This document shows positions 2,595 through 46,120 of a DNA stretch of 64,000 bases, piece after piece. Where the stretch lies: sequence record PP885688.1; one strand, given 5' to 3'. The notes under the pieces are model-generated. The model was not told the origin of the DNA. It was given only the letters and a program-made list of their open reading frames with translations, and ran no database searches. Positions within the stretch are counted from its first letter, which is position 1. Each line of letters opens with the position of its first letter. Position numbers and translations under genes: made by a program.

Positions 2595-2625
2595 CAACCT
2601 ACAAAGCGGCTCCCGCCAAAGATGA
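2595..2625 (-). promoter_or_regulatory. class A promoter motif
   Basis: TCATCTTT-N12-TTTGTAGGTTG upstream of PEP-CTERM gene; one of 10 copies. Confidence 0.7.
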
Positions 2626-2645
2626 CTTTGGCGGGAATATATTTG

Positions 2646-2939
2646 CTAGGCTGTTGTGGCTTCGTACTCGCGCATCAGCTGCTCACCCTGCGAGATCTGG
2701 GACAACAGAACGTCGAAGTTTGATTCGAGTTCGGACTGGGTCTTCTCACGCAGCTTGGAGAGCTCCTCGACGGTGAGGGTGTCGGCATTCTCGATACCGA
2801 GCGCCTTCAGCTGTTCGATCGCGCTGGTGACGCGGGCCTCTTCGACGCGTGAGTCGCCGACGAGTTTATCGCGCTTCGCACCGAGGTCCTTGACTGACTG
2901 CTGGGCCGTTTTGAGTTCCTTCTGAAAATCACGTTCCAT
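2646..2939 (-). CDS. small coiled-coil protein
   Basis: 97 aa, heptad-rich, GGAGG RBS, directly downstream of sbcC-like gene. Confidence 0.7.
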   Translation of the reverse strand: MERDFQKELKTAQQSVKDLGAKRDKLVGDSRVEEARVTSAIEQLKALGIENADTLTVEELSKLREKTQSELESNFDVLLSQISQGEQLMREYEATTA

Positions 2940-2948
2940 GACTACCTC

Positions 2949-4406
2949 CTAGGCTGCTGACTTCGAAATGGGATCGCCGCACTTACCGCAGAGAGTTACG
3001 TTCGCCTGAGCCTTTTTTTGCTCAGTCTTTCGCTGCTCTGCCTGTATCGTTGCGACTGCTTCTTGTGCGGCTGCGAGCTCCGCTTCGAGATCAGAGAGCC
3101 TGTGCTGCGCCAGCTGTTGAGCCTCGCGGCCCTTCACCAGCGCCTCATAACTTCTAATACCCAAGCGGTGACGCTCTACCTGAATTACGTGTGCATTTAT
3201 TTGCGTAGTGATCGCGTCGATCGCCGCAATGCGTGACTTCGTTGGTGAGTTCGAGGAGACCGTGAGCGCCGCCTCGGCTTCAGTGAGAACCTTGCCCCGT
3301 TTGTGCAGGGCGACGATGGCTGTCCAGTTGCCGACTACCAGCTCGATCGCATCGAGAACCTTGCCGTTGCTTGCGACGCGCGTCGAAGCTTCGACCAGCT
3401 GACCGAGATAGGCCGCCTGCCGGTACCGTCGTACCGCCGGAGCCGCATCGGGGACAGTGAGGACCTTCAGGAGGTCGGTCGTACGCTGATGGCGACCCTT
3501 GGCGTGCGCGGCCTGAGAGTAGGCGGCAGCCAGGGCGAAGTCATGGGCAACAGGCTCCGCATCCGGGACTACCAGATTCAGGACAACCTTGCTGATGCGG
3601 GCGTGACGTTCGAGAGCGGCGACGGCGGTCGCATAATTGGCGACCAGCTGAATGGCGACGGCGATCGGCTTGGTCTCAGGGATCACGAGCTGCTTGATGG
3701 TGGACTGAATCTGAGCGAGCCTGCGCCTATGCGCGATCAGGACATCGATCGTCGCGAGGATCTTCTCCTGCGTGCGTACCTGGGGCTCCAGACGATCGAT
3801 GACGGCCTGGACGGCTTCCGCACGATCGGCGAGAGCATCCAGCTTGGAGACGCGCTCCTCGGTTCCACGGGTCTCTTTGGCAAGCATCGTGGCCTGGGTG
3901 TTCTTCTCTCCGATGCGCTTGTTGCCAGCCTTCTTCCCAGCTTCAAGGCGCTCAGTGGACGAGAACGCTCCAAGGATAGAGTTCAGTGGGCCGGGCTTCT
4001 CTTCGATGATGAATTGGCCACCGAACTGGGTAGCGAAGATGGGATCGAGGGTGACGTCACCGATCTGGATGTCGCCCATGTTGAGGTCGAGTACCTCTTT
4101 CGGGATCGAGCCGCCCAGCTTGGCATAGGGTTCGCCCTTATCGACGACGTAGACGATGGATCCCTTGGGACCTTTCTTACGGGTAGCCTCGATAACATGA
4201 CCGTCGATCTCCAGAGTTACCTCCATGAGATCGCTGCCGACACGGACCTGACCGGCGTTGAGCTGGTTGCGCACGATACCCATAAAAGAGCGGAACAGGG
4301 CACTCTTGCCGAGGTTGCTCTCACCTACGACGACCGTGAGGTCCTCGATCGGCAGTTCGAATTCTTCCCAAGACTGAAAGTTCTTGGCGCTGAGTTTTAT
4401 AGCCAC
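2949..4406 (-). CDS. SbcC/Rad50-like protein, N-terminal ATPase half + coiled coil + zinc hook
   Basis: LSAKNFQSW, Walker A GESNLGKS, long coiled coil, terminal CGKCG; no signature/Walker B half. Confidence 0.8.
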   Translation of the reverse strand: MAIKLSAKNFQSWEEFELPIEDLTVVVGESNLGKSALFRSFMGIVRNQLNAGQVRVGSDLMEVTLEIDGHVIEATRKKGPKGSIVYVVDKGEPYAKLGGSIPKEVLDLNMGDIQIGDVTLDPIFATQFGGQFIIEEKPGPLNSILGAFSSTERLEAGKKAGNKRIGEKNTQATMLAKETRGTEERVSKLDALADRAEAVQAVIDRLEPQVRTQEKILATIDVLIAHRRRLAQIQSTIKQLVIPETKPIAVAIQLVANYATAVAALERHARISKVVLNLVVPDAEPVAHDFALAAAYSQAAHAKGRHQRTTDLLKVLTVPDAAPAVRRYRQAAYLGQLVEASTRVASNGKVLDAIELVVGNWTAIVALHKRGKVLTEAEAALTVSSNSPTKSRIAAIDAITTQINAHVIQVERHRLGIRSYEALVKGREAQQLAQHRLSDLEAELAAAQEAVATIQAEQRKTEQKKAQANVTLCGKCGDPISKSAA

Positions 4407-4416
4407 TTCTTACTCC

Positions 4417-4581
4417 TCAATGGGTCCGAGCCTCAGCCTGGAGCCGTTCATACTTCTCGATTCGTGACGCGTGGTTGTACTTCACTGCTCCCTGGATTCG
4501 TGTGGCGGCGCGGTGGTCAATGACCATGCACGGATAGCCTGCCTTCGCATCACACGAAGGGCAGCTGACGGTCCGCTGCAT
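4417..4581 (-). CDS. small putative Zn-binding protein
   Basis: MQRTVSCPSCDAKAGYPC..H..R, C-terminal part of track ORF 4417..4860. Confidence 0.5.
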   Translation of the reverse strand: MQRTVSCPSCDAKAGYPCMVIDHRAATRIQGAVKYNHASRIEKYERLQAEARTH

Positions 4582-4622
4582 CACGAGTTCCAACAACTTT
4601 CTACGGTCCTTCACTCTGCTCC

Positions 4623-4847
4623 CTAGCTGAAAAGCTGGCTGGTGATCTTGAAATTCTTCCCGGCATCCGTGGCCGTCCAGGTGTAGTAGGTGTAGCCAGG
4701 AGCTGAGTTGTGGTGCTGGATAACAAGGCCTTTCTTGACTAGAGCCCGCAGGACCGAACCGTCGCAGTTGGTGCTGGCGACTTTGAGAAGCTGGATGCGT
4801 TCGAGTACTCCCATTTGGCGTTCGGTCAGTGTGATCTGCTTGTCCAT
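4623..4847 (-). CDS. hypothetical protein, possible winged-helix fold
   Basis: 74 aa, GAGGG RBS, class A motif upstream; VLRALVKKGLV pattern. Confidence 0.6.
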   Translation of the reverse strand: MDKQITLTERQMGVLERIQLLKVASTNCDGSVLRALVKKGLVIQHHNSAPGYTYYTWTATDAGKNFKITSQLFS

Positions 4848-4861
4848 GTATCCCTCTCACT

Positions 4862-4892
4862 CAACCTACAAACCAGCTCGGGCCAAAGATGA
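4862..4892 (-). promoter_or_regulatory. class A promoter motif
   Basis: TCATCTTT-N12-TTTGTAGGTTG. Confidence 0.7.
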
Positions 4893-4901
4893 AAATGGTC
4901 T

Positions 4902-8178: not shown

Positions 8179-8212
8179 CTAATACCCATCCGGAGGGGCC
8201 TACCTGGATTAC
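8179..8212 (-). promoter_or_regulatory. class B promoter motif
   Basis: GTAATC-N20-GGTATTAG. Confidence 0.7.
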
Positions 8213-9005: not shown

Positions 9006-9029
9006 GAAGGCTAATACCCATGGAGAGGC

Positions 9030-10488: not shown

Positions 10489-10519
10489 CAACCTACAAGG
10501 CTAGGTCGCTTTGAGATGA
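10489..10519 (-). promoter_or_regulatory. class A promoter motif (variant)
   Basis: TCATCTCA-N12-CTTGTAGGTTG. Confidence 0.6.
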
Positions 10520-17953: not shown

Positions 17954-18039
17954 CAACCTACGGACCCGGAAGCGCCAAAGATGAAAATCTAAAAATCTTT
18001 TTTCAAAGTCATTTTTTGAGGGGTCGACCTTGCAGGTTG
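17954..18039. promoter_or_regulatory. divergent pair of class A promoter motifs
   Basis: Minus copy 17954-17984 (TCATCTTT-N12-TCCGTAGGTTG) and plus copy 18009-18039 (TCATTTTT-N12-CTTGCAGGTTG). Confidence 0.65.
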
Positions 18040-27917: not shown

Positions 27918-28616
27918 CTAAGCAACATTTTTCGCGAGCGCAGCAGCCTGCTTGTGGCCGGGAGCGAACCCGACACCACGATCAGGCACGATGGTGCCGC
28001 AGCAGCACTTGCACAAACGCGGCTCCGCGTCCTGCTGAGCAGCTTCCCCAGCAATGACAACAGCCAGAGCCTTACGCGCACGGTAGAGCACGAGCCGGGC
28101 GTTGGCCTCGGTCGTATCAAGCAGCTCCGCCATCGCCTCGAACGAGGTTCCGGCGAGGTGAAGGTTCAGCGCGATACGGAACCGGCCTTCCAGCTTCCCG
28201 ATCGCGTTGTGCACCGTCCGGTGGGCGAGGTTCTGCTCAGCCTTCCGGTCCTCGTAGCCGACGTCGATAGCCTTCCGGATCTGCCCGGTCGAGTTGGTGA
28301 CCATCCGATCGATCGAGTCGACCACCACCTCACGCTCGGTCTTCGTGTCCCGCCGGAACGACTGCGCGGTGTTCTTCGCAATCACAACCGTCCAGGTGCT
28401 GAAGCTCGAATCACCGGCGAAGCTGTCCAACTTACGGAAAGCCTTCACCAGCGTCTCCTGAATGATGTCGTCAATGTCGTCGACGGGCACCAACCGGTAA
28501 AGCTGACGAGTCAAGATGGGCGTGACGTACTCGCAGAGCTGCGTGATTGCAGTCTGGTCGCCCGTGCGGGCGGCTTCAACAAGTACGTTCTGTTCTTCCT
28601 TCGTGAGCCGGATCAT
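27918..28616 (-). CDS. ECF-type RNA polymerase sigma factor
   Basis: Region 2 (GDQTAITQL..DDIIQETLVKAFRKLDSF.GDSSFSTW) and region 4 HTH (SFEAMAELLDTTEANARLVLYRARKAL). Confidence 0.85.
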   Translation of the reverse strand: MIRLTKEEQNVLVEAARTGDQTAITQLCEYVTPILTRQLYRLVPVDDIDDIIQETLVKAFRKLDSFAGDSSFSTWTVVIAKNTAQSFRRDTKTEREVVVDSIDRMVTNSTGQIRKAIDVGYEDRKAEQNLAHRTVHNAIGKLEGRFRIALNLHLAGTSFEAMAELLDTTEANARLVLYRARKALAVVIAGEAAQQDAEPRLCKCCCGTIVPDRGVGFAPGHKQAAALAKNVA

Positions 28617-30245: not shown

Positions 30246-30332
30246 GCGTATTATCTCCCAGGTCTTTTGAAAAAGCTTCCCTTTTCTGCAACCTACAAAC
30301 CTGGGGGGCCCAAAGATGAATATCGGTAGAAA

Positions 30333-31193: not shown

Positions 31194-31195
31194 CA

Positions 31196-32708: not shown

Positions 32709-32713
32709 GGTGG

Positions 32714-33851: not shown

Positions 33852-33859
33852 CCTTCTTG

Positions 33860-34092: not shown

Positions 34093-34128
34093 ACAATTCA
34101 ACACACGCGGTAATGTTCATGTGCTGAA

Positions 34129-34395
34129 TGGTGGACCCGGCGAGAATCGAACTCGCGTCCGAATGACAAAACAAAGAGCATGTCTTTTCACTAGCTTTAC
34201 CACTCCTCTGTTAAGAGGCGGCGTCTGCGATGATCTGCAGGAATATCAAATTTGAAAGATTCTCAGAGGCTACCTGGGTAGCTTGATGTTGCAGCCCTGA
34301 GTGACTCACCTCCGGGTAGCGTTACTGCGGTCCGGCAGCGTAAATCACTCAGGTACTAATAGGGGATTCGGAAGTCGTTTCTCATCCGTCCCACA
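34129..34395 (-). ncRNA. ssrA: permuted tmRNA, acceptor piece
   Basis: Ends GGACGCGAGTTCGATTCTCGCCGGGTCCACCA at 34129 (T-arm, discriminator A, CCA); pairs with coding-piece 5' end including G3.U70; 5' end inferred from promoter at 34401. Confidence 0.85.
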
Positions 34396-34400
34396 CTTAC

Positions 34401-34434
34401 CTAATACCCAAGTGCGGGGCACTTCACCCATTAT
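34401..34434 (-). promoter_or_regulatory. class B promoter motif for tmRNA
   Basis: ATAATG-N20-GGTATTAG. Confidence 0.65.
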
Positions 34435-34778
34435 TGTTTTCGTAATCCCCAATCACTTGTATCGAGGACGACGACGGTGTCGCTGTTGGTAGGTAGCGGC
34501 TCGACCCCTGCCATGTAGTCGGTGACCACAAGCTTGCCGCGCGGGACCGACTGGTGCGTCCCCAGAACACAGTCCCAGATACCGCCGACGACTTCCTGCT
34601 TGCGCTCCTTCCATGTCGCCTTCCTCCGATAGATGAACGGGTGGAAGTCGATGCGGAAGTGCACGCGGTCAGCGGGGTGCATGTAGATTCGAATCTGGGC
34701 ATCCTTCACAGCCAGTGCGGTGATGTAAGCGACAGCTTCGGCGAGGCGGTGTAGATTTCTTTGCTGCGATTGCGTCAC
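34431..34778 (-). CDS. hypothetical protein
   Basis: 115 aa, AGGAG RBS, class B motif at 34810. Confidence 0.65.
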   Translation of the reverse strand: MTQSQQRNLHRLAEAVAYITALAVKDAQIRIYMHPADRVHFRIDFHPFIYRRKATWKERKQEVVGGIWDCVLGTHQSVPRGKLVVTDYMAGVEPLPTNSDTVVVLDTSDWGLRKQ

Positions 34779-34839
34779 TACTTACTCCTGGGCGCAAGCG
34801 CCACATACCCTAATACCCGTCCTACAGGCGCTTGGGCGA

Positions 34840-35796
34840 TTACTGAGGGGAAGATTCCTGCTTGACGTGCTCAACCAGCCACAGAGGCTTGTCGTAGGTG
34901 CTCTTCTTGTCGCTCTTCGTGATCCGGATATCGACGCCCTCTGCTGGCACCGGTAGCAATGTAACCTGGCCCGGCTTCGTAGGAAGTTGCTCCGGCGTCA
35001 TCCCTGCAAACGCGTAACCACCGATAACCTGATCGTTGGTGAGCAGATTCTGGAAGGTGACGCCAGGAGCGCGGGGAGCGATGCTAGCTTCCTTGACCTC
35101 GACAGGCTCAGCGTCGAAGTCCTTTGAAGTGACTCCGTCGGCGATCTGCTCCACGTCGATGAACATGCTGGCGCTGTCTTCGACCCACTCCACGTTGAGT
35201 CTGCGGCGGACTCGGTCAAACAGTTCGCGGGCCTGGTCATCATCGAGACCATCGATCAGGTCGGCGTTCTCCGGCAGCTTGTTCTCCAAGGCACGGATGA
35301 AGTCATAGTGCGCCCACTCGTTCCAGGCATCGTCGATCGCCTCATGACCAGCCTGGGCGTGGTCGTCAGAGTCCATGGTGGGGTCCTGATCGAGGGCCTT
35401 GAGGTCATCGAGGATCGAGCCTGTGATGGCGCTGATGCGGATCGCGATGCCGAAGGAGCCCTTATCGCCCTTGATCGGGAACACACCTTCGATGTCGGCG
35501 TAGCGCTTGAGGAAGACTCGATAGTTGCTGACCGCTGCCGCATCCTTCTGCAGGTCTGAGCCGGTGAGGCTGTTCGGCAGGAGGAAGGAGCCGGGATCGA
35601 TCTCGCCGCTGCCATTCTCGTTGTGGCGGATGTCGCGGAAGAGCTCGGGCGCTTCCTTGTCGGAGAGGTAGACCTCTTCACGGTGATGGCGGACGTAGTC
35701 CAGCACTTCGGCGGACGCGTCTACAGCGTGAACTTCAACTTCGGGCTCGGCCTGTACAACATCGGCGATGCGGATCAACAGCTTGCTCTTGGACAT
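34840..35796 (-). CDS. acidic hypothetical protein, possibly virion-associated
   Basis: Start moved to MSKSKLLIRIA, GGAG RBS. Confidence 0.7.
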   Translation of the reverse strand: MSKSKLLIRIADVVQAEPEVEVHAVDASAEVLDYVRHHREEVYLSDKEAPELFRDIRHNENGSGEIDPGSFLLPNSLTGSDLQKDAAAVSNYRVFLKRYADIEGVFPIKGDKGSFGIAIRISAITGSILDDLKALDQDPTMDSDDHAQAGHEAIDDAWNEWAHYDFIRALENKLPENADLIDGLDDDQARELFDRVRRRLNVEWVEDSASMFIDVEQIADGVTSKDFDAEPVEVKEASIAPRAPGVTFQNLLTNDQVIGGYAFAGMTPEQLPTKPGQVTLLPVPAEGVDIRITKSDKKSTYDKPLWLVEHVKQESSPQ

Positions 35797-35807
35797 TACG
35801 GTGACTC

Positions 35808-36227
35808 CTAGTACTCGATGAGGTCCGACTCGACCCACCAGTTGGGTTGTGAAAATAGCTTGATTGGGCCGCCCTCGAACATGACGTAGTAACCGGCGAT
35901 GGGGTCTTTGCCGTAGTCAAGTAACCGGAGGTTCTCTTCAAGAACCACGGTGACGGGGAACTTGGGCCAGATGGCATAGACCTGTTCGAGCGTGTCCTCG
36001 GCGGCTATACGGAGCTGATCCCACAGCAGGATCGAGTTGCGCTTATCGCTGAAGAACTTCATGTAAAGCGACGGGTTGTCCTGCGGGAACATCAGCTGAT
36101 TGCCGAAGATGAGAGTGTGTGGGGGACGGTCCTGATACTGATGAACGAACTTGTGCGACGTCACCGTGATGATGGGGCGATAGCCAGCGCCTTCGTTGAT
36201 CGCGAGGATGCGTCCGCCCAGGCTCAT
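35808..36227 (-). CDS. hypothetical protein
   Basis: 139 aa in operon. Confidence 0.6.
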   Translation of the reverse strand: MSLGGRILAINEGAGYRPIITVTSHKFVHQYQDRPPHTLIFGNQLMFPQDNPSLYMKFFSDKRNSILLWDQLRIAAEDTLEQVYAIWPKFPVTVVLEENLRLLDYGKDPIAGYYVMFEGGPIKLFSQPNWWVESDLIEY

Positions 36228-36282
36228 TTAGAACCTACCCGAACGAGGATTGGATCGTTGACCGCTACTTCTCCGTTACCCT

Positions 36283-36867
36283 TCAAAACTGGATCTCCCA
36301 GTCGATGCCCATGTCGACAGCCGCAGGCAGGATGAAGCTCGGGGTCGTGATGTAGTTGATTAGGGTGACGCTGTTAGCAACTGGATTGGTGGGGTCGAAG
36401 TACGGCGCGGTGAGCATGTTCGTTGGGCCGCCATTCGCGGTCAACGTGGTGCCGCCGCCGATCAGACCCATCTCTCGGATCGGAGTCGAGATCGCGTCCG
36501 TCGTGGCATTGAGGATGGTCTGGAAGGATACGAGGGTGGTGAGGCCGGTGGTCGGCTGCTCGGTGGCATCGAGGAAGCGGACCTGTGAGAGCTGCTTGCG
36601 CTTGATCTCGGAGACCATGGCGATCTGCGTCGGCAGGGGATCCGGCTGAGTGGAGGGAGACCATCCATTCACGCCCTGGCCGCCAGCGCCGACAGCGAGG
36701 CCCCAGACACCGGCGACCGGGTCAAGGGAGTTGGCGAAGATACGGGCGGCGAGCCATGACACGCCCTCGGTGATGACATTCTTGCGCTCGTAGAGAGTGA
36801 CCGATGGCCGCTCCAGAGCATAGATACGGACGTGGCCCTTGAGGGCGAGAGCTAGACCTTCACGCAT
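36283..36867 (-). CDS. putative tail/baseplate-associated protein (tail-collar fibre-like)
   Basis: KNVIT.G, LAVG.G, IREMGLIGG..F..I.WEIQF pattern typical of myovirus tail-fibre N-terminal modules. Confidence 0.5.
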   Translation of the reverse strand: MREGLALALKGHVRIYALERPSVTLYERKNVITEGVSWLAARIFANSLDPVAGVWGLAVGAGGQGVNGWSPSTQPDPLPTQIAMVSEIKRKQLSQVRFLDATEQPTTGLTTLVSFQTILNATTDAISTPIREMGLIGGGTTLTANGGPTNMLTAPYFDPTNPVANSVTLINYITTPSFILPAAVDMGIDWEIQF

Positions 36868-37307
36868 TTGAAAATCTCCTTGACGAAACCGACCCGTGCA
36901 ACATCGGGCACATTCTTCGGGGTCAAGGAAGTCCAGCGGCTTGTGATCGTCCAGTCCGAGAAGCTATCGAACAAGGAGATATGTAGGCCGACCGGGAGCT
37001 TACGAGTGTCCCCTATCCAGAACACGGAAGTCTGTCCGCGTTCATTCGTTAGGCCGAATTGAGTGAGGAGGTTGACTGCGGGGTGTAGCAGGCTTACCGA
37101 GAGGAATCCCGGAAGAATCGAACCGGGGTAGGGCTCGACAGATACGATGTCGCGCCACACCTCTTCGCCGGTGAGTGTGTCAGTGATGTGGAGCCGGTCA
37201 CCACGGCGGTACGTCTCGCCCTGGGGATTGATGGCAACGTGGTGGCGTTTGCAGTCAACCAGCGACTTGAAGTCGTGGTAGCTGTCCTCGTAGTGGTGTA
37301 GCGACAT
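36852..37307 (-). CDS. hypothetical protein, possibly ASCH/PUA-like
   Basis: 151 aa; YRRGDRLHI pattern; class B motif at 37324. Confidence 0.55.
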   Translation of the reverse strand: MSLHHYEDSYHDFKSLVDCKRHHVAINPQGETYRRGDRLHITDTLTGEEVWRDIVSVEPYPGSILPGFLSVSLLHPAVNLLTQFGLTNERGQTSVFWIGDTRKLPVGLHISLFDSFSDWTITSRWTSLTPKNVPDVARVGFVKEIFKCVKV

Positions 37308-37334
37308 GAAAAGGCCTCATGTGCTAATACCCAT

Positions 37335-39401
37335 CTAGGAGGCTCTTGCCTGAATAAGTCGTGAACCCCAATCTGCGGGTCGTCCTTTCGGCTTCTTGGT
37401 CAGCGAGTCGTGGATCGTGACATGGAAGGCTCGCGGGGTGCTGCGGGTGCTCTGATCGCGGTAGAACTCGATGACGTCCTTCGGGGTTCCGTCGGGATCT
37501 TTGACCTCGACGATGTTGAGCTCCAGGTGGCGGACCTCGGGGGTGCGCTGCACGGTCGCGGCGGTCACAACCTTCTTATAGGTGGCGTCGGTGAAGGCCA
37601 GCGGCATCTCGAAGCTTCCTTCGTACATGCGGAGGGTCGGATCCTGGGAGCTCATGCCGGAGTCGGTGGCACTTTCGCCGGTGATGTCACGGAAGCAATC
37701 CTGTGCGAGGCCGGTGACCTCGACGATCTCGTCCTCGGTGTACTTCATGGAGAGCAGGAAGGCCGAGATATCGTCGAGCAGAGCAGAGCAGGCCTGGCGG
37801 CTGAAGCTCGAGACTTCGGCGTGCGTCAGACCGTTGATCGGGAAGGTAATTGTGAATTGGGTGAAATTGGGTATGCCTAGGTCGAGGCCGATGGTGACCT
37901 GTGGACGCGTGCCCTGCTCGATAGCAACAGTAAGCTCGGCGTTGCGTGGGGAGATGAAGGCGGTCTTCGGGGCGGTGACGGGGCGATAGGCCTGGATCGC
38001 GGTGTCACCACGCAGTCGTGCTGCACAGATGCGATGGAAACCGTCGATGACTCGACCTTTGCGGCTAACCACTACGGGCGGGAACGGTGTCTTCTCGTCT
38101 GCATACTCGCGGATCCGCTCAGCGGGAGATGGGGTATCGGCCTGGAAGCGGAACTCGAGACTCTCCATGTTTCGCGCATTCCAAAGGTCGTCGGGGTGGA
38201 GCTCGTTCAGATTGAACGTGCCCAGTTTCCACTCGGGGCACTGCGCGATCTGCCTGGCATACGATTCCTTGCCGTTGAAGCCGCTACCCTTGGTGATGCC
38301 GCGAACGTACTGGATCAGATCTTTGGAGGAGATGGTGTCTGGACCCTGCACCGCAATCTTCATCACATAGATGCCATTCTTCGCGTCTCTCTTCACTGGA
38401 TAGCGCTGCTTCAAACGTCCCCAGGCCTTCTTGGCGTCAGACGTCTGGTCGCTGCTCGACTGGAAGTACTCGGCTCCGAGCTTCTTCGCTTCCTCGATCG
38501 CCTTGTCATAGAGCAGCTGGCCGAGGCCGGTACCGCGCCAGTCATCCTCGACGTTGATGTCGTAGACCATGAGGGCGTTTGCGTCTTGGTTCTCGGGCTT
38601 GCCGACTTCGATGTAGCCGACCGTGACGCCGCCATCACGCAGACGTTCGGTGTGCGGATACATCTCGGCAGGAGCGACAGCCCAGATGACCCACAGCTCG
38701 TTCAGCGCGGGCGTACCGTCATTCACAAAGCGGAGTTGAGAGAGATCTTTCGCCGCGCCGGTCTTAGCCGCTGGCTCCTTCGGTTCACCGTACACAGCGA
38801 ACACAGGCTCGGGCTTGATACTCTTTGAAATCGTCGTATTCTCAACCGAGTCCACGAGGCCAAAGTTGATGCGTCCGTTATTCCCACCGATGTAGCTGAT
38901 GATCCAATCCCGACCGTCATAATGCAGCGGCTTGCCGACATATTGATCAGCGTAACGACGCGCGTCGCCGACCACACGGGGGTGCTCCGGTGCACGGTGC
39001 TGCCACAGTTTGAAGGCGTCGTCCGACACGGAGTGAAGCGGAACGCCCATTCCGGGGACAAGTTTCAGACCGTTGGTCCTGAGCCATGCATCCGCTGCGT
39101 CGTAGAGCTTGGTGGCAACGCCCTTGCGCTGGAACTTCGGGTCCACGGCGGCCTTGTATACGGTGCGCTCATCCTTGGGGCAGTCGTCACACTTCCACGG
39201 CCACAGTGAGATGTAGCCGATGAGACGGGTTCCAATGTAGGCCCGGAACTCATACTCACCGCCGCCTCTGCGTCCCTGGCCCTGGCGGATTTTGACCTTG
39301 TCGATGGTGAAGCCAGCAGGCACGGGCGTCTCGCTGGTGAACATCTCTTTACCAGCGGCGAGGGTTGTGATCGGGTTGAGCAGACTGGCGCGGACGGTCA
39401 T
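37335..39401 (-). CDS. polyvalent protein: two GNAT domains + ParB-like domain
   Basis: FQRKGVATKLY; WRGTGLGQLLY..QTSDAKKAW; PPVVV..VIDGFHRICAA; start MTVRASLL with AGGGG RBS. Confidence 0.7.
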   Translation of the reverse strand: MTVRASLLNPITTLAAGKEMFTSETPVPAGFTIDKVKIRQGQGRRGGGEYEFRAYIGTRLIGYISLWPWKCDDCPKDERTVYKAAVDPKFQRKGVATKLYDAADAWLRTNGLKLVPGMGVPLHSVSDDAFKLWQHRAPEHPRVVGDARRYADQYVGKPLHYDGRDWIISYIGGNNGRINFGLVDSVENTTISKSIKPEPVFAVYGEPKEPAAKTGAAKDLSQLRFVNDGTPALNELWVIWAVAPAEMYPHTERLRDGGVTVGYIEVGKPENQDANALMVYDINVEDDWRGTGLGQLLYDKAIEEAKKLGAEYFQSSSDQTSDAKKAWGRLKQRYPVKRDAKNGIYVMKIAVQGPDTISSKDLIQYVRGITKGSGFNGKESYARQIAQCPEWKLGTFNLNELHPDDLWNARNMESLEFRFQADTPSPAERIREYADEKTPFPPVVVSRKGRVIDGFHRICAARLRGDTAIQAYRPVTAPKTAFISPRNAELTVAIEQGTRPQVTIGLDLGIPNFTQFTITFPINGLTHAEVSSFSRQACSALLDDISAFLLSMKYTEDEIVEVTGLAQDCFRDITGESATDSGMSSQDPTLRMYEGSFEMPLAFTDATYKKVVTAATVQRTPEVRHLELNIVEVKDPDGTPKDVIEFYRDQSTRSTPRAFHVTIHDSLTKKPKGRPADWGSRLIQARAS

Positions 39402-39408
39402 AGTTCCC

Positions 39409-42400
39409 CTACTTACCATCCGGTAGCGAACCGGCGGCGGTATAGTCTGCGGTCTCTCCGTTGAGCCATGCGAGGAAGGCGGGGTCCGACTTAATGCCAG
39501 CAGGTGCTGCCGCCTGCTTGCGTGGCTGCAGGAGCCTCGACGTCTTTTGAGGAGCGTCTGTGTCGTGTTCCAGTTCCTGCTGCAGCTGTTCTGGTGTGGT
39601 CTTATCAAAGGAATCGCGATAGTCGTTCTTTACGGAGTTGACTACCTCGTGATACTTACCACTGATGTTCTCACTGAGCGACGGCTTGTCTTCGCTGCGC
39701 CGGTCTTCCATGTCGTCGCTCTTGTAGCCCTTCGGGAGCTGATCGATCCTCTGTGTGAAGCTGCTGGGTTGTGTCGTTGGCTGTTGTTGAGTGGGTTGCG
39801 TGTTTCCCGGATGAGCCATCATGAACGGAGCGAGGGCGAGGCCCAGCCAGTCCTTCTTTGCAGCTTCCTTGTTGGCAACGTACTCGGCCCAGTGCTGTTT
39901 GCGCTCCGCTTCAGGGTTGGTGGATGCGAGATGAGTGTTCGTGAGATCGAGGTACTTCGCAGTAAATGAGCGGCCAAGGATTGCGGCTGCGGTTGCGCGA
40001 TGGTTTCCGTCGAGCAGCCACAGGCCAGACTGCGTCTTCGCGACGATCATCGGCTCTTTGTCCGACGTTGCGTCCACCAGATCGGGGTGCGCGAGAAAGT
40101 AGTCGACGCCCTTCGCGGTCACCATGTTCTGGCTGACCTTCACCTGATCGGGACTGAACGTCTTGGTCTCTGCCTCCGCCATCAGCTTGTGTAGTGGAGT
40201 CGTGAGCGTGAAGAGCTTCATGAATGTTGGGCCGGACTCGTCAACCTTCAACCACCGCTGCTTGACCCAAGTCTTGTAGGGGGCTTCCACGTATGGCGAT
40301 GTGAGGTCCTCTTCTGTGTGCCAAACACCTGTCTTGGCTATCGCGCCAACGATCTTCACTGGTCCGATGTGTGCGGCCTTACCGCTGTCCCGTATGATCT
40401 GTTTCGAGATCTCGGGCTTCTGCTTCGCGAGGACAATCGCCAGACGCTTCAGATAGCGGAAGAACATGGTCCGCTTGATCGGAGACGCCAGATCTTGAAT
40501 CGCTTCACGGCGGTTGCCCTTCCAGTCCGGGTCTCCGCCAGAGCAGATCCAGAACATGTTGAAAACCTCGGCAAAGTAGTGGTCATTACCGTTGAGCTCT
40601 CCACCCTCAATCAGCTCGCCGAGGGAGTCTTCGTCGGGGATCAGGTGAGAGTCACCCGAGTCGACCTGAACCTGCAGCACGACACCGTCTTCCCCTGCGT
40701 AGTTCTCCGCGATCACAGGATCGGTGGTGATGTAGACCGCGTTCTCCTGGGGTGCTGGGCCTCCGCTGTTCTGTGCCTTTCCGGGGACGATCTCACCTGC
40801 AGCCTCGATCGCCGCCGCATTGGCCGCAGAGGTGCCGTGATACCACTTCTCGGCAGAGGCACTCTTGCGCGTTACGAAGTTGAATCGGTCGAGCTCTTCG
40901 CCGTTGAGCTGATCGAAGGTCTTTCCGGGCGCGACCTCTTCCAGTGCAGCCTTGAACTCTGGCGACGCCATGTATTTGCGGCCAGCTTCACGGGCCTCAT
41001 TCACTGTAAGGAATCGAGCCTTCTTGCTTGCGGTGGTGCTGTGATTCTGAGTGCTGAACTCGCCGTTATTGCCAATGGCTGACTTTGCCTGGCTCTTGTC
41101 GAAGATCTTGTACTCGACCTCACCGGAGTTCTCGCCATAGCCTTCGTGAATCGCACCGTCGAAGCCCTTCGCTTTAGCCTCCGCAATGAACTCGTTGTCT
41201 CCGAGAAGTGGGAACGCGAACATGTAGAGCTCGTGTAGACGATCCGGGGCCTCGGTCAGCATTTGCTCAACGCTATCGAACTCCTGAGACCAATCCTCCT
41301 CCCACGCACCCGTCTCGCTGATTCCGTCAGCATGCTTGAGCGCGTACTTCATGGCGACGTCCTCACCCATCTGTGTGGCGAGATCTGAGAAGTTGATGAA
41401 CGGCTCGTCGAGCGTGTTCAAGATCGGATTCTCGATGCGCAGATAGCAGGCGTAGACACGTGGTCGGGCAGGTATGTCACCCTGCTCATTCGGTGACTCT
41501 GCGTAGAGGCTGGCGGTACCGGCGTCGCCGAAGCTGATTGCTGTATCGCGAGAGTGAAACTCTTCGTTCGACTCTCCATGCTCCCCGCGATAGACGACGA
41601 GAGGATTGCCTTGGGCATCCTTGACGAGGGAGTTGCGAAACCACGCTTTGAAGGCTGGTGTGTCTGTGAGTTTCTGTGCCTGGGCCGGTGCCTCTGCGAC
41701 CGCAGCGGTAACCGCGAAAGAGTATGAGTGATTCCCTTCGTAGCCGTCGTCCTCAGCCTCAGCTGCGGTTTGGATAACGATCGGATAGTCCGTGTGGAAC
41801 TGGTCGTAGGTTGGATCCACGACAAGACCCTGTATCGTCAGCCATGTGTGGGAGACCCCGTTGTACTCCCCGGCGGTCATCGCACAGCGGTGTCCGTTCT
41901 TGGTGAGCAGGGTGTAGAGCTCCTCGGTGACGGGGATGCAGTCTCCGTCCTTCGCAGTGCGGGTTCCTATCGTGTTGTGACGTGCCTGCTGGGCGACCTC
42001 GGTGAGTTGTTCGTTTGTCAGCGGGGCGGAAGCCGTAATGCTCTTATTGTTTGGATCGAACGCGCCACTGTTGCCGATCGCAGACTTGACTTGATTAGGA
42101 TTGAAGACGATCCAGCTGTCATTCCCGGCGTCCTCGACGACGTTCTCGTAAACGATTCCGTCGTACCCCATACCCTCAAGGACCTTGAAGGCCGCGTCGT
42201 TGTCGTACTGGAGCTCCCAGAACGTGTCGCTGTCGATGATGTTCTGTTCGCGTAGGGTCATGGCGACGGAATCTTCGCCTTCCCAGCCGCGTGGGTAACG
42301 TCGCTCTCCATCCTCGTCGTCATCCGAGAGCGGCTCACCATCGTCACCGATGGAAGCAAGGTCAGGTAGACGCAGGGCATTCTTGATCGACAGGTAGACA

Positions 42401-43197
42401 GGAACGATGTTCGCGCCATGGCTGCGTGCGGGGTTCTTGATGGTGTTGTCGTAGAAGCTGGTCAGATCGGAGTGCCGATCGTTCGCGGCTTGCTGCGTCC
42501 CAAAGTGTGTGAACGCGCGGAACTCTCCGATGTCGGACTGGGTCGCGTGGTACATCACGAGTGGCTTGCCCGCCTTGTCGACTACCTCTGACCCGGCGAA
42601 CCAGGCCTTGAATGCCGGTGTCTCAGTGACCGGCATAGTGGCCGGTTTTGACTCCGCGGAATTCGCTGATTCTGGGGTGTTTACCTCAACCTCTGGCTCT
42701 GCGATGGCCGCTTGTTTGGCCGATCCTTTTCCGAGGCCCTTCTCGTCTAGAATCCCCTTGAGGTGGTCGAGGAGTTCTTCCAGCGTCTCGTATACCGGCA
42801 TACCGGCACGCTCGCAGACAATGTCCACGTTTCCCTTGCGGTAGAAGCCTTGGGGACACGCCACAGCGCCGGGCACTTCGAGGTGCGCTCCGAGTTCTTC
42901 GAAGGTGATGGGTGACTTGCTGCTCTCCTCAAAGTTGAAGATGCGGAAATCGGCGGCTTCGAGGTTGTCCTGCTCCCACTCGACCTGCTCGCGGAAGTTG
43001 GGGTCATCCTTGCTCTGCTCCCACGACGAGTCCCAGTCCGCGCGGCGCGGGTTGGTGAGCACGACGTCGTAGTCAGCAAGGGCCTCGACGACCATCTTCT
43101 GCCAGTCGCGTGACTCGCCCATGTCGATGGTGCCTGCCAAGAAGATGCTGAACCGGTCCGCCGGTACCTTGTGTGGTGCTTGGATCTCTGTCGCCAT
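39409..43197 (-). CDS. large polyvalent protein: NDT-like + two ART-PolyVal + transglutaminase-like + ART + ParB-like
   Basis: IFLAGTIDMG..W..NPRR..EWE; twice TPAFKAWF..D..G.PLV.Y..GYDG..VKSAIGN.G.F; GDC..HTW..VDPT; WYHGT..PDEDS; LLDGNHRATAA. Confidence 0.75.
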   Translation of the reverse strand: MATEIQAPHKVPADRFSIFLAGTIDMGESRDWQKMVVEALADYDVVLTNPRRADWDSSWEQSKDDPNFREQVEWEQDNLEAADFRIFNFEESSKSPITFEELGAHLEVPGAVACPQGFYRKGNVDIVCERAGMPVYETLEELLDHLKGILDEKGLGKGSAKQAAIAEPEVEVNTPESANSAESKPATMPVTETPAFKAWFAGSEVVDKAGKPLVMYHATQSDIGEFRAFTHFGTQQAANDRHSDLTSFYDNTIKNPARSHGANIVPVYLSIKNALRLPDLASIGDDGEPLSDDDEDGERRYPRGWEGEDSVAMTLREQNIIDSDTFWELQYDNDAAFKVLEGMGYDGIVYENVVEDAGNDSWIVFNPNQVKSAIGNSGAFDPNNKSITASAPLTNEQLTEVAQQARHNTIGTRTAKDGDCIPVTEELYTLLTKNGHRCAMTAGEYNGVSHTWLTIQGLVVDPTYDQFHTDYPIVIQTAAEAEDDGYEGNHSYSFAVTAAVAEAPAQAQKLTDTPAFKAWFRNSLVKDAQGNPLVVYRGEHGESNEEFHSRDTAISFGDAGTASLYAESPNEQGDIPARPRVYACYLRIENPILNTLDEPFINFSDLATQMGEDVAMKYALKHADGISETGAWEEDWSQEFDSVEQMLTEAPDRLHELYMFAFPLLGDNEFIAEAKAKGFDGAIHEGYGENSGEVEYKIFDKSQAKSAIGNNGEFSTQNHSTTASKKARFLTVNEAREAGRKYMASPEFKAALEEVAPGKTFDQLNGEELDRFNFVTRKSASAEKWYHGTSAANAAAIEAAGEIVPGKAQNSGGPAPQENAVYITTDPVIAENYAGEDGVVLQVQVDSGDSHLIPDEDSLGELIEGGELNGNDHYFAEVFNMFWICSGGDPDWKGNRREAIQDLASPIKRTMFFRYLKRLAIVLAKQKPEISKQIIRDSGKAAHIGPVKIVGAIAKTGVWHTEEDLTSPYVEAPYKTWVKQRWLKVDESGPTFMKLFTLTTPLHKLMAEAETKTFSPDQVKVSQNMVTAKGVDYFLAHPDLVDATSDKEPMIVAKTQSGLWLLDGNHRATAAAILGRSFTAKYLDLTNTHLASTNPEAERKQHWAEYVANKEAAKKDWLGLALAPFMMAHPGNTQPTQQQPTTQPSSFTQRIDQLPKGYKSDDMEDRRSEDKPSLSENISGKYHEVVNSVKNDYRDSFDKTTPEQLQQELEHDTDAPQKTSRLLQPRKQAAAPAGIKSDPAFLAWLNGETADYTAAGSLPDGK

Positions 43198-43248
43198 AAG
43201 TCCCCTACAAAGAAGCCGGTATTCCTTCGGTCGGAATAGGCCCATTTG

Positions 43249-43336
43249 CTAATACCCATCGCGAGGGGCTGAGGGCGAATATTAAAAAATTTCCCCACTT
43301 CAAATTCATCTTTGGGTCGATCTGGTTTGCAGGTTG
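43249..43336. promoter_or_regulatory. divergent control region: class B (minus) and class A (plus)
   Basis: ATATTC-N20-GGTATTAG on minus; TCATCTTT-N12-TTTGCAGGTTG at 43306-43336 on plus. Confidence 0.7.
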
Positions 43337-43341
43337 TAGAT

Positions 43342-43599
43342 ATGTCCGTCATCAAATGCACCCAGTGCCACCAGCTAGTCGACCGAGAGAATGATTCTCA
43401 CGTTGTAATTCCGAACACCGAGCACGTCGGCTACAAGCGCCACCGCCCGACCAAGTTCGTTCACGCCTCCTGCTTCGAGAAGCTCGTCATCTTCAATCAC
43501 GAGATCCGTGTTCGTGACGACGCGAAACGCGACGCCCAGCTCGCGGAGGTCATGAAGAAACTCGAAGCGAAGCAGCTGGAGAAGGCAGGTCAGGAGTGA
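43342..43599 (+). CDS. small Zn-binding hypothetical protein
   Basis: CTQC..HASC. Confidence 0.6.
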   Translation: MSVIKCTQCHQLVDRENDSHVVIPNTEHVGYKRHRPTKFVHASCFEKLVIFNHEIRVRDDAKRDAQLAEVMKKLEAKQLEKAGQE

Positions 43600-44684
43600 A
43601 CATCTCCCGACCCTCCACCCGCTACCTTGAACTCGACTCCCTTCGCGGCCTGGCCGCGATGATCGTTGTCTACCACCACTTCAGAAACATGTTCTTCTCC
43701 CAGACCGACCCCAGCAGCTTCCTACAAAACGTGCTGCTGCATCCCTTGGCTTCTGGCTTCGAGTCAGTGCGGCTGTTCTTCGTGCTAAGCGGATTTGTGC
43801 TGGCGCTCCCCTACCTATCGGGGCGGCAGAAGCCCTACCCCAAGTTCGTCCTGGGCCGCGTCGCCCGGATCTACGGCCCTTACCTGTTTGCCCTTGCCCT
43901 CGCAGTCGGCGGCGCTCTGATATGGCACGGTCAACTCACCGCCTTCGATTGGGCTCGGGGCTGCTGGAATAACCCTGTGTCGTGGAAGCTTGTGCTTCAG
44001 CACATCCTGTTTCTAGGTAACTACGATCACGCGGAGTACAACGTCGCGTTCTGGTCTCTGATCGTCGAGATGAAGGTCTCCCTCATCTTCCCGCTGCTCG
44101 TTCTATTCGTGCGCTACACCCGCGTGAGCGTTCAAGCCGCGACCGTGCTCGTCCTTGTGATTGTGTCTCAGAGACTTATGCACCCGATCCTTCATCCAGA
44201 GGACCTCAGCGCCTTCCTGATCGGCGTTATGCTGGCCAAATATCGTGGGCAGATCCAAATGCTCTGGCTGCGGAGCAGACTATGGGCGCGGGCAAGCTTC
44301 ATGCTCGCATCGCTAATCGCCTTCTTCTGCAACCTTCACCCGATCGGGTTCATGTGGCACATCGGGGCGCTCCCGATCATCCTCGGTGCTGCCGGAATCA
44401 TCGTCTTTTCCTTGAACTCCACCCGAGTACAGGGCCTGTTGAAGATGCGTGTGCCGGTCTTTCTCGGCAAGATCTCCTTCAGCCTCTACCTCGTCCACAA
44501 CACTGTGCTCTTCGCGCTCACAGCGGTCCTGCAGGGGAAACATCCTTACTTCTTCCTCCCTATCTACCTGACTGCCGCAATCGCGCTGGCCTACCTCTTC
44601 TATCTCGCGATCGAGAAGCCGTTCACTGAGCTCAGCAAGTGGGTGAGTTCGGTACGTCGGGTTGCCGTGGAGGTGGCCGCCTAA
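43596..44684 (+). CDS. acyltransferase family 3 (OafA/YrhL-like O-acyltransferase)
   Basis: LDSLRGLAA..YHH, V.LFFVLSGFVL, FWSLIVE, LGKISFSLYLVH, IEKP; multi-TM. Confidence 0.9.
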   Translation: MNISRPSTRYLELDSLRGLAAMIVVYHHFRNMFFSQTDPSSFLQNVLLHPLASGFESVRLFFVLSGFVLALPYLSGRQKPYPKFVLGRVARIYGPYLFALALAVGGALIWHGQLTAFDWARGCWNNPVSWKLVLQHILFLGNYDHAEYNVAFWSLIVEMKVSLIFPLLVLFVRYTRVSVQAATVLVLVIVSQRLMHPILHPEDLSAFLIGVMLAKYRGQIQMLWLRSRLWARASFMLASLIAFFCNLHPIGFMWHIGALPIILGAAGIIVFSLNSTRVQGLLKMRVPVFLGKISFSLYLVHNTVLFALTAVLQGKHPYFFLPIYLTAAIALAYLFYLAIEKPFTELSKWVSSVRRVAVEVAA

Positions 44685-44700
44685 AAATCTCTCACCAAAG

Positions 44701-44731
44701 TCATCTTTGAACGTTTTCGGTTTGTAGGTTG
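44701..44731 (+). promoter_or_regulatory. class A promoter motif
   Basis: TCATCTTT-N12-TTTGTAGGTTG. Confidence 0.7.
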
Positions 44732-44749
44732 AGGAAGAGGACACCACAC

Positions 44750-45001
44750 ATGGTTATGGCAGCAGTCAGCGAATTTTCGGTAGCAGAGCAGATCGAGGCA
44801 GTTCAACTTGCCAAACAGAACGGAGACTGGTTCCCCGCATGCGGCGGCACTGAGACCCCCTTCACCTCCCGCTCCGGCATCCGGATGCTGTACTGCTGGC
44901 AACCATCCACCGGCAACCACGCCTACATCAACCTCGGCACCGACATGATCATGTCGCAGGAAGAAGCCGACGCCGCCCTGATGCACCACATCAACCAGTA
45001 A
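44750..45001 (+). CDS. hypothetical protein
   Basis: ..CGGTETPF..RSG.R.LYCWQPSTG.HAY.. typical small phage protein. Confidence 0.65.
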   Translation: MVMAAVSEFSVAEQIEAVQLAKQNGDWFPACGGTETPFTSRSGIRMLYCWQPSTGNHAYINLGTDMIMSQEEADAALMHHINQ

Positions 45002-45022
45002 ATAACTTTTTCACCACCAAAT

Positions 45023-45053
45023 TCATCTTTAGTCGATTTCACTTTGTAGGTTG
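45023..45053 (+). promoter_or_regulatory. class A promoter motif
   Basis: TCATCTTT-N12-TTTGTAGGTTG; next 12 nt identical to the 44701 copy. Confidence 0.7.
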
Positions 45054-45067
45054 AGGAAGAGGACAAC

Positions 45068-45412
45068 ATGACATTCACTTACTGCTACGACGACATCGCG
45101 AAGAACCAAGTAAAGCTTGCCCAGGCCCGTTTTATGCGCAAGGTGAAGAAGCTTCTTCCCAACTTCAAAGTGGAGTTCTACTTCAACCGTGGTGGTATCG
45201 CTGTGTGGGGTGAGACCTACGTCAAGGTCTTCAACCAGGGCGGCGAGCCCGTTGTCGAGGCCTGCCTCTCGAAGGATCACAGCTACATCCGTCAGTGGAA
45301 CGGTAACCGCAGCGGTCGCAACATCACCGTCCAGACCATCGGCTCACTCGCCGACCTCAAGTTCGCCGAGCACGTCAACACGCTGTCGGCGTCCCCTTTC
45401 CGCGCCTTCTAA
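45068..45412 (+). CDS. hypothetical protein
   Basis: 114 aa, GAGG RBS. Confidence 0.65.
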   Translation: MTFTYCYDDIAKNQVKLAQARFMRKVKKLLPNFKVEFYFNRGGIAVWGETYVKVFNQGGEPVVEACLSKDHSYIRQWNGNRSGRNITVQTIGSLADLKFAEHVNTLSASPFRAF

Positions 45413-45597
45413 TGAACACTTCGCCCAAGCCGCGTCGACCCAGAGTGCCGTCCCCCAAGAAGGGCTGCCCTATCTGCACCCGGTCGATCTCGATCAACGG
45501 ATTCGCGTGGTCTTCTCACCAGAGAATGCACCAGCGCCACGAACAGCGTCACGGAATGCTTCTGCCATTCCCCACAGGAAAGGAACACCATGCGTAA
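45412..45597 (+). CDS. small C2H2-type zinc-finger-like protein
   Basis: CPIC-x13-HQRMH; stop/start overlap with neighbour. Confidence 0.5.
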   Translation: MNTSPKPRRPRVPSPKKGCPICTRSISINGFAWSSHQRMHQRHEQRHGMLLPFPTGKEHHA

Positions 45598-46072
45598 GCA
45601 AGCCACGATTCAACTTTACGGATTCACCGGCACCGGTTCCAACATGAAGGAAGCCAAGGAAGACGCTATCCGTCAGATCATGCAGGTCAGCCAGGGGAAG
45701 TGGGATCCGATCCTCGTCTCATGGCGTGGTCACACTGCCCTGATCTACCGCATCCCCGAGGGCTACGTGTCGCGTTTCCTCCAGCACGACGGGGATCCGC
45801 TCAGGATGTCGGGTGGCTCGCAGATGCATGGCCTCGACCTCTCTGAAGTAGTCCGCTCCGTCCAGAACCATGTCGTGCAGCTCGGATGGAACCACGAGGA
45901 TCCGATCGACACCTTCCCCGAGTGGTTCACCGATACCAACGCACGCGCCGAGGCGATCAGCTACCGGCAGTGGCAGCTGAACTACCGCGAGCTCAAGAGT
46001 CGTGGCTTCAGCGACACCCAGGCCCACCAGCTCGCAGCCGGGCATCCTGACACGTGGCCGGTTCGCGCGTAA
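45590..46072 (+). CDS. hypothetical protein
   Basis: 160 aa, AAGGA RBS. Confidence 0.65.
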   Translation: MRKQATIQLYGFTGTGSNMKEAKEDAIRQIMQVSQGKWDPILVSWRGHTALIYRIPEGYVSRFLQHDGDPLRMSGGSQMHGLDLSEVVRSVQNHVVQLGWNHEDPIDTFPEWFTDTNARAEAISYRQWQLNYRELKSRGFSDTQAHQLAAGHPDTWPVRA

Positions 46073-46089
46073 TATTTTCTTCGCCAAAG

Positions 46090-46120
46090 TCATCTTTGGG
46101 TCATCGAGGTTTGTAGGTTG
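46090..46120 (+). promoter_or_regulatory. class A promoter motif
   Basis: TCATCTTT-N12-TTTGTAGGTTG. Confidence 0.7.

Follow-up and report, generated by a model that had tools for sequence, protein, structure and literature searches.

Cascades of phage-encoded sigma factors are known from Bacillus phage SPO1 (gp28, then gp33/34) and from phiEco32 (gp36), and the middle promoters of phage T4 combine a box at -30 with a sigma-70 -10 element. To our knowledge, nothing is known about transcription in the phages of Acidobacteriota, a phylum that is among the most abundant in soil. Here we analyze a family of promoter-like motifs, class A, in Tunturiibacter phage Tunturi_5 (PP885688.1), a 308,711-bp myovirus whose host is the acidobacterium Tunturiibacter psychrotolerans X4BP1, together with gp211, a phage-encoded sigma factor of the extracytoplasmic function (ECF) type that is a candidate for reading them. 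The stretch analyzed (the window; 64,000 nucleotides) comprises bases 124001-188000 of this genome, and positions are those of the window unless given as record positions. Megablast aligned window positions 43000-63000 to this record with 100% identity, and a genome rebuilt from its annotated stretches gave the placement of the window as a whole. The paper describing the phage does not mention promoters, sigma factors, RNA polymerase, transcripts, or virion proteomics (PMC11924767).

The promoters of ECF (group IV) sigma factors have stringently conserved boxes, with AAC as the core of the one at -35 and GT within a -10 box that lies 16-18 nt further on, and they are subject to autoregulation (PMC1540707, PMC7826278); the AAC is the hallmark of the -35 box (PMC1540707), and ECF sigmas usually autoregulate (PMC7826278). 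Like the promoters of E. coli RpoE (GGAACTT-N16-TCAAA), class A sites consist of two short, stringent boxes with ∼17-18 nt from the AAC-type core to the -10 GT, and they have a C at the equivalent of -31 followed by T-rich bases; as in RpoE systems, the gp211 gene lies under what would be its own promoter class and its product keeps the equivalents of R171 and R176 (PMC1540707). Unlike RpoE promoters, class A has AT in place of the AA of AAC (TCATC) and TC in place of the upstream GG, its -10 sequence is GTAGGTTG rather than GTCAAA, and it keeps TYYG upstream of the -10 element, though gp211 has no recognizable domain 3; gp211 also differs from RpoE in being encoded by a phage and in carrying a Cys-rich C-terminal tail.

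The programme proposed here for Tunturi_5 would resemble the SPO1 and phiEco32 cascades in its use of the host core polymerase, a sigma specificity of its own and several promoter classes tied to function, but those phages begin from ordinary host-type early promoters, whereas Tunturi_5 has no recognizable ones before its lytic genes. Class A also resembles the early and middle promoters of T4, which are likewise long and conserved with an upstream A/T tract and lie before many small unassigned open reading frames (ORFs) and DNA-metabolism genes; it differs from them in a -10 element that is invariant beyond TAnnnT and in a predicted start that is fixed on an AUG or a Shine-Dalgarno core.

The class A motif and its register with gene starts

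The initial annotation listed ten copies of the motif in the window, five on each strand, as a promoter class with an invariant 12-nt spacer. A search for both boxes with this spacer, allowing up to 3 mismatches, found all ten where they had been placed (six exact, the other four with 1-3 mismatches) and none in 100 dinucleotide shuffles. The whole genome holds 35 sites (plus strand, 16; minus strand, 19), and no match to a reversed control pattern was found. When a matrix is derived from these 35 sites, the members score 34-59 bits and the next best place in 617 kb (both strands) scores 17 bits; class A is a hard-edged class without a tail of weak members.

Alignment of the 35 sites shows that conservation spans ∼60 nt, from motif position -18 to +41 (position 1 is the T of TCATCTTT and position 37 the predicted +1), which is longer than was first described. 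An A-then-T-rich tract lies at -18 to -9 (about -55 to -46 from the predicted +1), followed by cAAA[G/T] at -4 to 0, then TCATCTTT, and G/C and G at 9-10. The -35 box is thus cAAA[G/T]TCATCTTTGG, at -41 to -27 from the predicted +1, with TCATCTTT at -36 to -29. A T-rich spacer separates it from the downstream box (GGTYYGTAGGTTG), which reads GG-TYYG-TAGGTT-G, with GG at 19-20, T-Y-Y-G at 21-24 and TAGGTTG at 25-31. Six of the seven bases of TAGGTTG are invariant in all 35 sites, and the remaining one, position 25, is T in 31; for each base of GTAGGTTG, 31-35 of the 35 sites agree. Position 32 is A, and position 37 is a purine in every site. The TAA stop codon of the upstream gene often lies inside the A/T tract, and for that reason the tract can be called an upstream promoter (UP) element only tentatively.

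The gene context of the 35 sites, checked against the GenBank annotation, is uniform: every one points the same way as the annotated gene that comes next, and that gene starts 5-150 nt further downstream. An ATG occupies motif positions 37-39 exactly in 12 of the 35 sites, where ∼0.47 would be expected from a per-position ATG frequency of 0.013, and 11 of these 12 are annotated start codons (in the window those of gp188, gp202, and gp226). A further 13 sites have a Shine-Dalgarno core (GAGG, AAGG, or AGGA) that starts at position 37, with an ATG 4-10 nt later; gp182, gp228, gp229, and gp231 are the window genes of this kind. Thus, an ATG or a GAGG-type core stands exactly 6 nt past TAGGTT in 25/35 sites. 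This register argues that TAGGTT is a -10 element (at -12 to -7, with TG at -14/-13) and that the transcripts begin at the start codon or at the ribosome site, and we infer the start point from it. With TAGGTT as -10 element and a spacer of 17 bp, the -35 hexamer falls on CATCTT (motif 2-7), a spacing that is the same in all 35 sites. Two boxes ∼17 bp apart, a predicted start 5-8 nt past the downstream box and an orientation into a gene are what is expected of a sigma-70-family promoter. The bases after +1 are also alike between sites, whether coding or not (ATGAGCACAC, GAGGGCACA), which suggests a constraint on the first transcribed bases. The ∼60-bp bipartite layout with its variable spacer sequence points to a multisubunit polymerase with a sigma factor and not to a T7-like enzyme. 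We are therefore confident that class A is a promoter that starts at position 37, and the earlier reading of the motif as a promoter class, with TAGGTT as a -10 element and an upstream element that is not TTGACA, holds up well.

Absence of host-type promoters

As a standard for the host sigma-A we used the promoters of Tunturi_3 and Tunturi_4, phages of the host genus that are unrelated to Tunturi_5 and in which no gene for a sigma factor or an RNA polymerase is annotated. The siphovirus Tunturi_4, which infects T. empetritectus, has ∼13 intergenic promoters that follow the pattern aaCATC-TTGACAcc-N13-gTGTAnnAT, and Tunturi_3, whose host is T. psychrotolerans, has ∼12-18 of the form gcTTGACA-N14-TGnTATAgT. 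Since both conform to TTGACA-N17-(TG)TAnnnT, the host sigma-A is canonical. Neither class A motifs nor those of class B, a second promoter-like class described below, occur in Tunturi_3 or Tunturi_4. On a matrix trained on these two phages, matches of at least 18 bits number 18 in Tunturi_3, 11 in Tunturi_4, and 0 in Tunturi_5. The Tunturi_5 genome is depleted of host-type promoter sequences, with seven matches of at least 10 bits against 31.6 +/- 5.7 expected (40 dinucleotide shuffles, minimum 14). Over the whole genome this matrix finds no strong host-type promoter before any lytic gene; the few weak host-like promoters (TACACT-N6-ATG) are confined to a plasmid-like replicon block outside the window.

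Class A itself shares with the Tunturi_3 and Tunturi_4 promoters a TG directly before TAnnnT and some upstream A-rich bases, and the -10 part of the host-type matrix gives its TG-TAGGTT +6.6 bits. It differs from them in having TCATCTTTGG and an invariant TAGGTTG where they have TTGACA and a variable -10 hexamer; for its -35 hexamers the host-type matrix gives values of -10 to -21 bits, and no class A site reaches 10 bits in total. A scan of window positions 30001-50000 with the sigma-70 consensus gave 4 matches against 5.5 +/- 2.2 expected, none of them at class A sites. The canonical promoters of the sister phages, together with their absence and depletion in Tunturi_5, argue that class A is not a standard host sigma-A promoter. 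The test against the host-type promoters of sister phages and the depletion statistic are new here, as is the ECF assignment with metagenomic orthologs given below.

Counting both strands, the 88-kb Tunturi_4 genome contains 93 copies of the word CTAGGAT, far more than expected of a 7-mer that includes CTAG. It lies mostly inside genes and was rejected as a Tunturi_4 -10 element, being a genome-wide word.

gp211 and the reading of class A

The product of gene 211 is an ECF-type sigma factor. Its only Pfam domains are Sigma70_r2 and r4_2, it scores 62.5 bits on the ECF superfamily model TIGR02937 (cut-off 42.9) and matches PHROG 1740, and among solved structures its best match is RpoE of E. coli (E = 3e-19). 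No other Sigma70_r2 match turned up when all six frames of the complete Tunturi_5 genome were searched. No close relative was found among GenBank phages, a sigma search of viral contigs gave no useful match, and a metagenome scan with a sigma alignment returned only bacterial ECF sigmas with ∼30% identity to gp211. Four such homologs from soil bacteria (∼30% identical) have CTCAACC-N16-GGTCTAA upstream of their own genes, which shows TCAAC to be a genuine ECF -35 variant in this branch. In every class A site 17 nt separate the A[T/A]C of the -35 box from the YGT of the -10 box, which is within the ECF range, and the cognate sigma gene would lie under the same promoter class, since the class A site at 30289 stands at the head of the operon that includes gene 211. 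The C-terminal 45 residues of gp211 (27918-28060) form a Cys-rich tail (CKCxCGT...GHK) beyond domain 4 that is common to gp211 and two 62%-identical relatives; it may be a zinc-binding regulatory extension.

Metagenomic relatives suggest that the motif and the sigma factor have changed together. Synteny with gp214 through gp210 is seen on contig L018, which encodes a sigma factor 62% identical to gp211; the contig's ortholog of the site at 30289 (contig positions 1663-1692) has TCAACTCT..GGTTTGTAGGTT and, upstream of the gp214 homolog, reads ..TTCAACTCT-N12-TTTGTAGGTTC. On contig L330 the ortholog of the site at 10489 reads ..TCAACATC-N12-GATGTAGGTTG, followed after six bases by the ATG of a gp188 homolog (56% identical). 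Both orthologous sites have GTAGGTT unchanged and TCAAC at -35, with the proteins diverged by ∼40%. Among gp211 and its relatives, identity is 70-75% in domain 2 but only 45-51% in domain 4; the recognition helix reads NARLVLYRARK in gp211 and NAKSVLLRARK or NAKSTLHRARK in the relatives, and the equivalents of the RpoE contact residues R171 (R or K) and R176 are kept in all (PMC1540707). The conserved domain 2 and diverged domain 4 parallel the constant -10 and changed -35 box. Class B boxes are identical in Tunturi_5 and these relatives, so that the change in domain 4 has no counterpart in class B. Scans of viral contigs with the whole class A motif, with its half, and with class B gave only single matches, consistent with chance.

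From these resemblances we infer, at about even odds, that class A is the gp211 regulon. In this model class A, used 35 times, would be read by the multisubunit core of the host RNA polymerase, directed there by gp211, and its transcripts would begin either with AUG (leaderless) or with the Shine-Dalgarno core GAGG. If gp211 is the reader, the class A promoter at the head of its operon would give positive feedback, and the requirement for gp211 would make class A a delayed-early or middle regulon rather than the set read first by the unmodified host sigma-A holoenzyme. The invariance of GTAGGTTG fits a stringent alternative sigma better than it fits sigma-A, which is tolerant at -10 to -8. A core supplied by the host accords with the gene content of the phage: no RNA polymerase gene is annotated in Tunturi_5, no RNA polymerase beta-like domain was found in six frames (14/14 control genomes matched), and a Pfam search of the large hypothetical proteins gp128, gp160, gp70, gp348, and gp332 gave no match and no hidden polymerase. 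The T7-like domain PF00940 was also absent in six frames, a weak negative as the control genomes were likewise unmatched.

Several observations weigh against gp211 as the reader of class A. The covariation is drawn from three sigma sequences and two orthologous sites, and it may reflect no more than a faster evolution of sigma domain 4. The -10 YGT is mostly TGT (29/35) and not CGT (6/35), and the -35 core of Tunturi_5 is TCATC, with ATC in 33/35 sites and AAC in 1/35. The gp212-gp211 pair has a class B motif directly upstream (29226), and gp213 is preceded by a motif like that of a third class, C, so that the argument from autoregulation does not single out class A. TG-TAGGTT resembles the extended -10 TGTAnnnT of the host, and sigma-A could therefore bind it. 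The start site and timing of class A are themselves deduced from sequence. Finally, if gp211 reads class A, the first gp211 must come from another source, and classes B and C do not look host-like either. It is this combination of resemblance and two-site covariation with three classes upstream of gp211, a missing AAC and a -10 element that suits sigma-A that keeps our estimate for the pairing at the middle of the scale.

Class A offers a testable map of the temporal programme of Tunturi_5, and it raises the question of how a phage without host-type promoters gets started. It is also a compact, sharply defined promoter with a predictable start and two natural variants, leaderless and with the Shine-Dalgarno core at +1, that could serve as genetic parts for a tool-poor phylum, with gp211 as the candidate orthogonal ECF sigma to accompany them.

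Three alternatives, each of which we consider unlikely, deserve discussion. In the first, host sigma-A reads class A through an extended -10 element (TG-TAGGTT with the A/T tract), and the TCATCTTTGG box binds a separate activator or a shut-off repressor. Extended -10 promoters of E. coli sigma-70 can work without a -35 hexamer, TG with TAnnnT is the -10 form of the strong Tunturi_4 promoters (TGTATTAT, TGTACTAT, TGTAGAAT), and among the three classes, class A alone combines T at -12, A at -11, and T at -7; its -10 region also has a positive score on the host-type matrix. The many small ORFs of unassigned function and the DNA methyltransferase in class A units are also typical of early genes. 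However, the G, G, and T at -10 to -8 and the G at -6 are not needed by sigma-A, yet they are invariant, including in the relatives; the protein that would bind the box is hypothetical, and host-type promoters are avoided throughout the genome.

A second alternative, which we hold to be similarly improbable, has a host alternative sigma (e.g., an RpoE-like ECF sigma of the envelope stress response) reading class A first, with gp211 then taking over and amplifying. It would account for the first gp211 in a genome without sigma-A-type promoters, and it agrees with the ECF-like architecture of class A and with the nearest bacterial relatives of gp211, which are RpoE-like soil ECF sigmas with TCAAC-type -35 sequences. 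On the other hand, no class A-like site was found in the 21 kb of Tunturiibacter DNA scanned, and the bacterial homologs are ∼30% identical with a -10 sequence, GTCTAA, that differs from GTAGGTT. A bolder version, that the whole lytic programme runs without a host sigma-A-type promoter and that class A is a phage ECF regulon primed by a host envelope-stress ECF sigma or by an injected protein, is speculative though somewhat less improbable; if it were true, the phage would hijack the ECF branch of the host, and not the housekeeping branch, from the first minute. The second alternative is close to the initial annotation, which had taken class A for probably the early regulon, possibly read through an uncharacterized host sigma. 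The housekeeping promoters of the host are canonical, and given the ECF-type geometry of class A and the phage-encoded ECF sigma, a delayed-early or middle class under a phage sigma is at least as likely.

The third alternative invokes another phage factor, either the divergent, putatively sigma-like gp3 or a pair in the style of MotA and AsiA, with the TCATCTTTGG box replacing the -35 hexamer. Because there are three promoter classes and one recognizable sigma, unrecognized factors must exist, and a box at about -30 with a sigma-A-like -10 element is the arrangement of the T4 middle promoters. Against this, gp3 has no match in Pfam, PHROGs, NCBIfam, or PDB sequences, and T4 middle promoters have a variable TAnnnT where class A has the invariant TAGGTTG; no MotA- or AsiA-like genes are annotated in Tunturi_5, in which no search aimed at such proteins was made. 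We give this reading the same low probability as the other two.

That the motif is no promoter at all, and instead an RNA processing site, a repeat that duplication or recombination has spread, or a site bound by a protein unrelated to initiation, is very improbable, since the boxes are fixed while spacers and flanks vary, all 35 sites are co-oriented with a gene at sigma-70-family bipartite spacing and 25 keep the exact ATG/GAGG register, and the adjacent genes 228 and 229 are unrelated and hence no duplicated cassette, even though the A/T tract often holds an upstream TAA stop and may double as a terminator tail. Three other promoter types were also rejected: a T7-like promoter, which is one continuous ∼23-bp block ending past +1 and not a bipartite ∼60 bp with a variable spacer; a sigma-54 promoter (TGGCAC-N5-TTGC, with GG and GC 10 bp apart), since in class A 13 nt separate GG (9-10) from TTG (22-24) and there is no GC doublet; and the Bacteroidetes-type TTTG/TAnnTTTG, since the spacing is 15 nt and not 19 nt and the sequence TTG and not TTTG.

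Genes under class A sites and other elements

The class A sites and other elements of the window are listed in Table 1. The genes downstream had been characterized as accessory, and this holds for a probable PEP-CTERM protein and the O-acetyltransferase, but not for the SbcCD-like nucleases, the ECF sigma operon, or the endolysin that class A also heads. The site at 17954 heads the run from gp201 to gp189, which includes a helicase and a DnaB-like helicase, and the unit under the site at 46090 includes the annotated regulator gp235 and the endolysin gp236. Outside the window class A heads genes for a DNA methyltransferase, a ligase, a RecT-like protein, and a peptide deformylase.

Table 1. Class A cores, class B motifs, and the gp211 gene in the window
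Feature	Position	Strand	Fit to motif	Predicted +1	First gene and its start	Remarks
Class A core	2595..2625	-	exact	2589	gp179, 2516	73-nt leader; then gp178 and SbcD-like gp177
Class A core	4862..4892	-	exact	4856	gp182, ATG 4847	predicted transcript begins GAGGG; exonuclease gp181 next
Class A core	10489..10519	-	3 mismatches	10483	gp188, ATG 10483	predicted leaderless; overlaps last 19 nt of gp189
Class A core	17954..17984	-	2 mismatches	17948	gp201, ATG 17926	back to back with site 18009
Class A core	18009..18039	+	3 mismatches	18045	gp202, ATG 18045	predicted leaderless; weakest site, 34 bits
Class A core	30289..30319	-	exact	30283	gp214, ATG 30245	heads gp214-gp213-gp212-gp211 (ECF sigma operon)
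Class A core	43306..43336	+	1 mismatch	43342	gp226, ATG 43342	predicted leaderless; O-acetyltransferase gp227 next
Class A core	44701..44731	+	exact	44737	gp228, ATG 44750	predicted transcript begins GAGGA
Class A core	45023..45053	+	exact	45059	gp229, ATG 45068	predicted transcript begins GAGGA
Class A core	46090..46120	+	exact	46126	gp231, ATG 46135	predicted transcript begins GAGGG; heads gp231 to gp239
gp211 gene	27918..28616	-				ECF-type sigma, candidate class A reader; in operon under class A site 30289
Class B motif	3155-3163	-
Class B motif	8180-8188	-
Class B motif	9012-9020	-
Class B motif	27885-27893	-
Class B motif	29218-29226	-
Class B motif	31119-31127	-
Class B motif	34402-34410	-
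Class B motif	37325-37333	-
Class B motif	43250-43258	-

The 23 identical bases shared by the sites ahead of gp228 and gp229 (44721-44743 and 45043-45065) are real, but there is no sign that they reflect promoter-gene cassettes shuffled by recombination, as had been proposed; gp228 and gp229 share no protein similarity, which rules out duplication of such a cassette. The additional 12 bases that the two sites share correspond to the consensus of the class at the transcript start (AGGAAGAGGACA-like), and similar strings are present at three other sites (record positions 91295, 236413, and 66700).

The O-acetyltransferase gp227 (43596-44684, plus strand), which lies in a predicted leaderless class A unit, is 43-48% identical to acyltransferases of Edaphobacter and Tunturiibacter (Acidobacteriaceae). 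A homolog lies at a Tunturiibacter gelidoferens locus, and gp227 was probably acquired from the host lineage, judging by these similarities; a further relative, on contig L334, is bacterial and not phage. A genome-contig scan with the phage ParA found no Acidobacteria among its matches, and a plasmid collection gave only distant ParA matches and no DNA match to the replicon block. Elsewhere, the class A site at record position 81696 starts a 7-codon mini-ORF, MGTHNSR-stop (record 81660-81683, minus strand), ∼100 nt ahead of gp104; its first codons are similar to those that open gp62 (MSTHNSP), a gene located at a different class A site.

In the large tail gene gp245, ARAGORN predicts a 91-nt tRNA-Leu (GAG) at 59758-59848 on the plus strand, antisense to the gene; this call may be a false positive.

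Two other promoter-like classes accompany class A, both without a T at the equivalent of -7 and without ECF-type spacing. Class C is late-type, roughly GACTAC/GATTAC-N10-CTTTAKAGG, and lies before structural genes (e.g., record positions 276394, 290092, and 290946); the class C-like motif before gp213 in the sigma operon (29682-29790) is conserved in contigs L018 and L019. Class B consists of an A/T tract and ATAATC-N18-TGGGTATTAgc and has ∼40 copies genome-wide, with the box spacing fixed in 34/38 copies and an ATG at a distance of 4 or 6 nt from TATTA; pairing between the spacer and sequence just past the start is frequent, and the motif is unchanged in L018 and L019. It lies mainly before genes of replication and nucleotide metabolism, the putative sigma-like gp3, and a transfer-messenger RNA (tmRNA). 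This tmRNA, which is unannotated in GenBank, is a permuted two-piece form at 33899-34195 on the minus strand (Rfam RF04321, 86 bits), with the class B motif ∼200 nt upstream.

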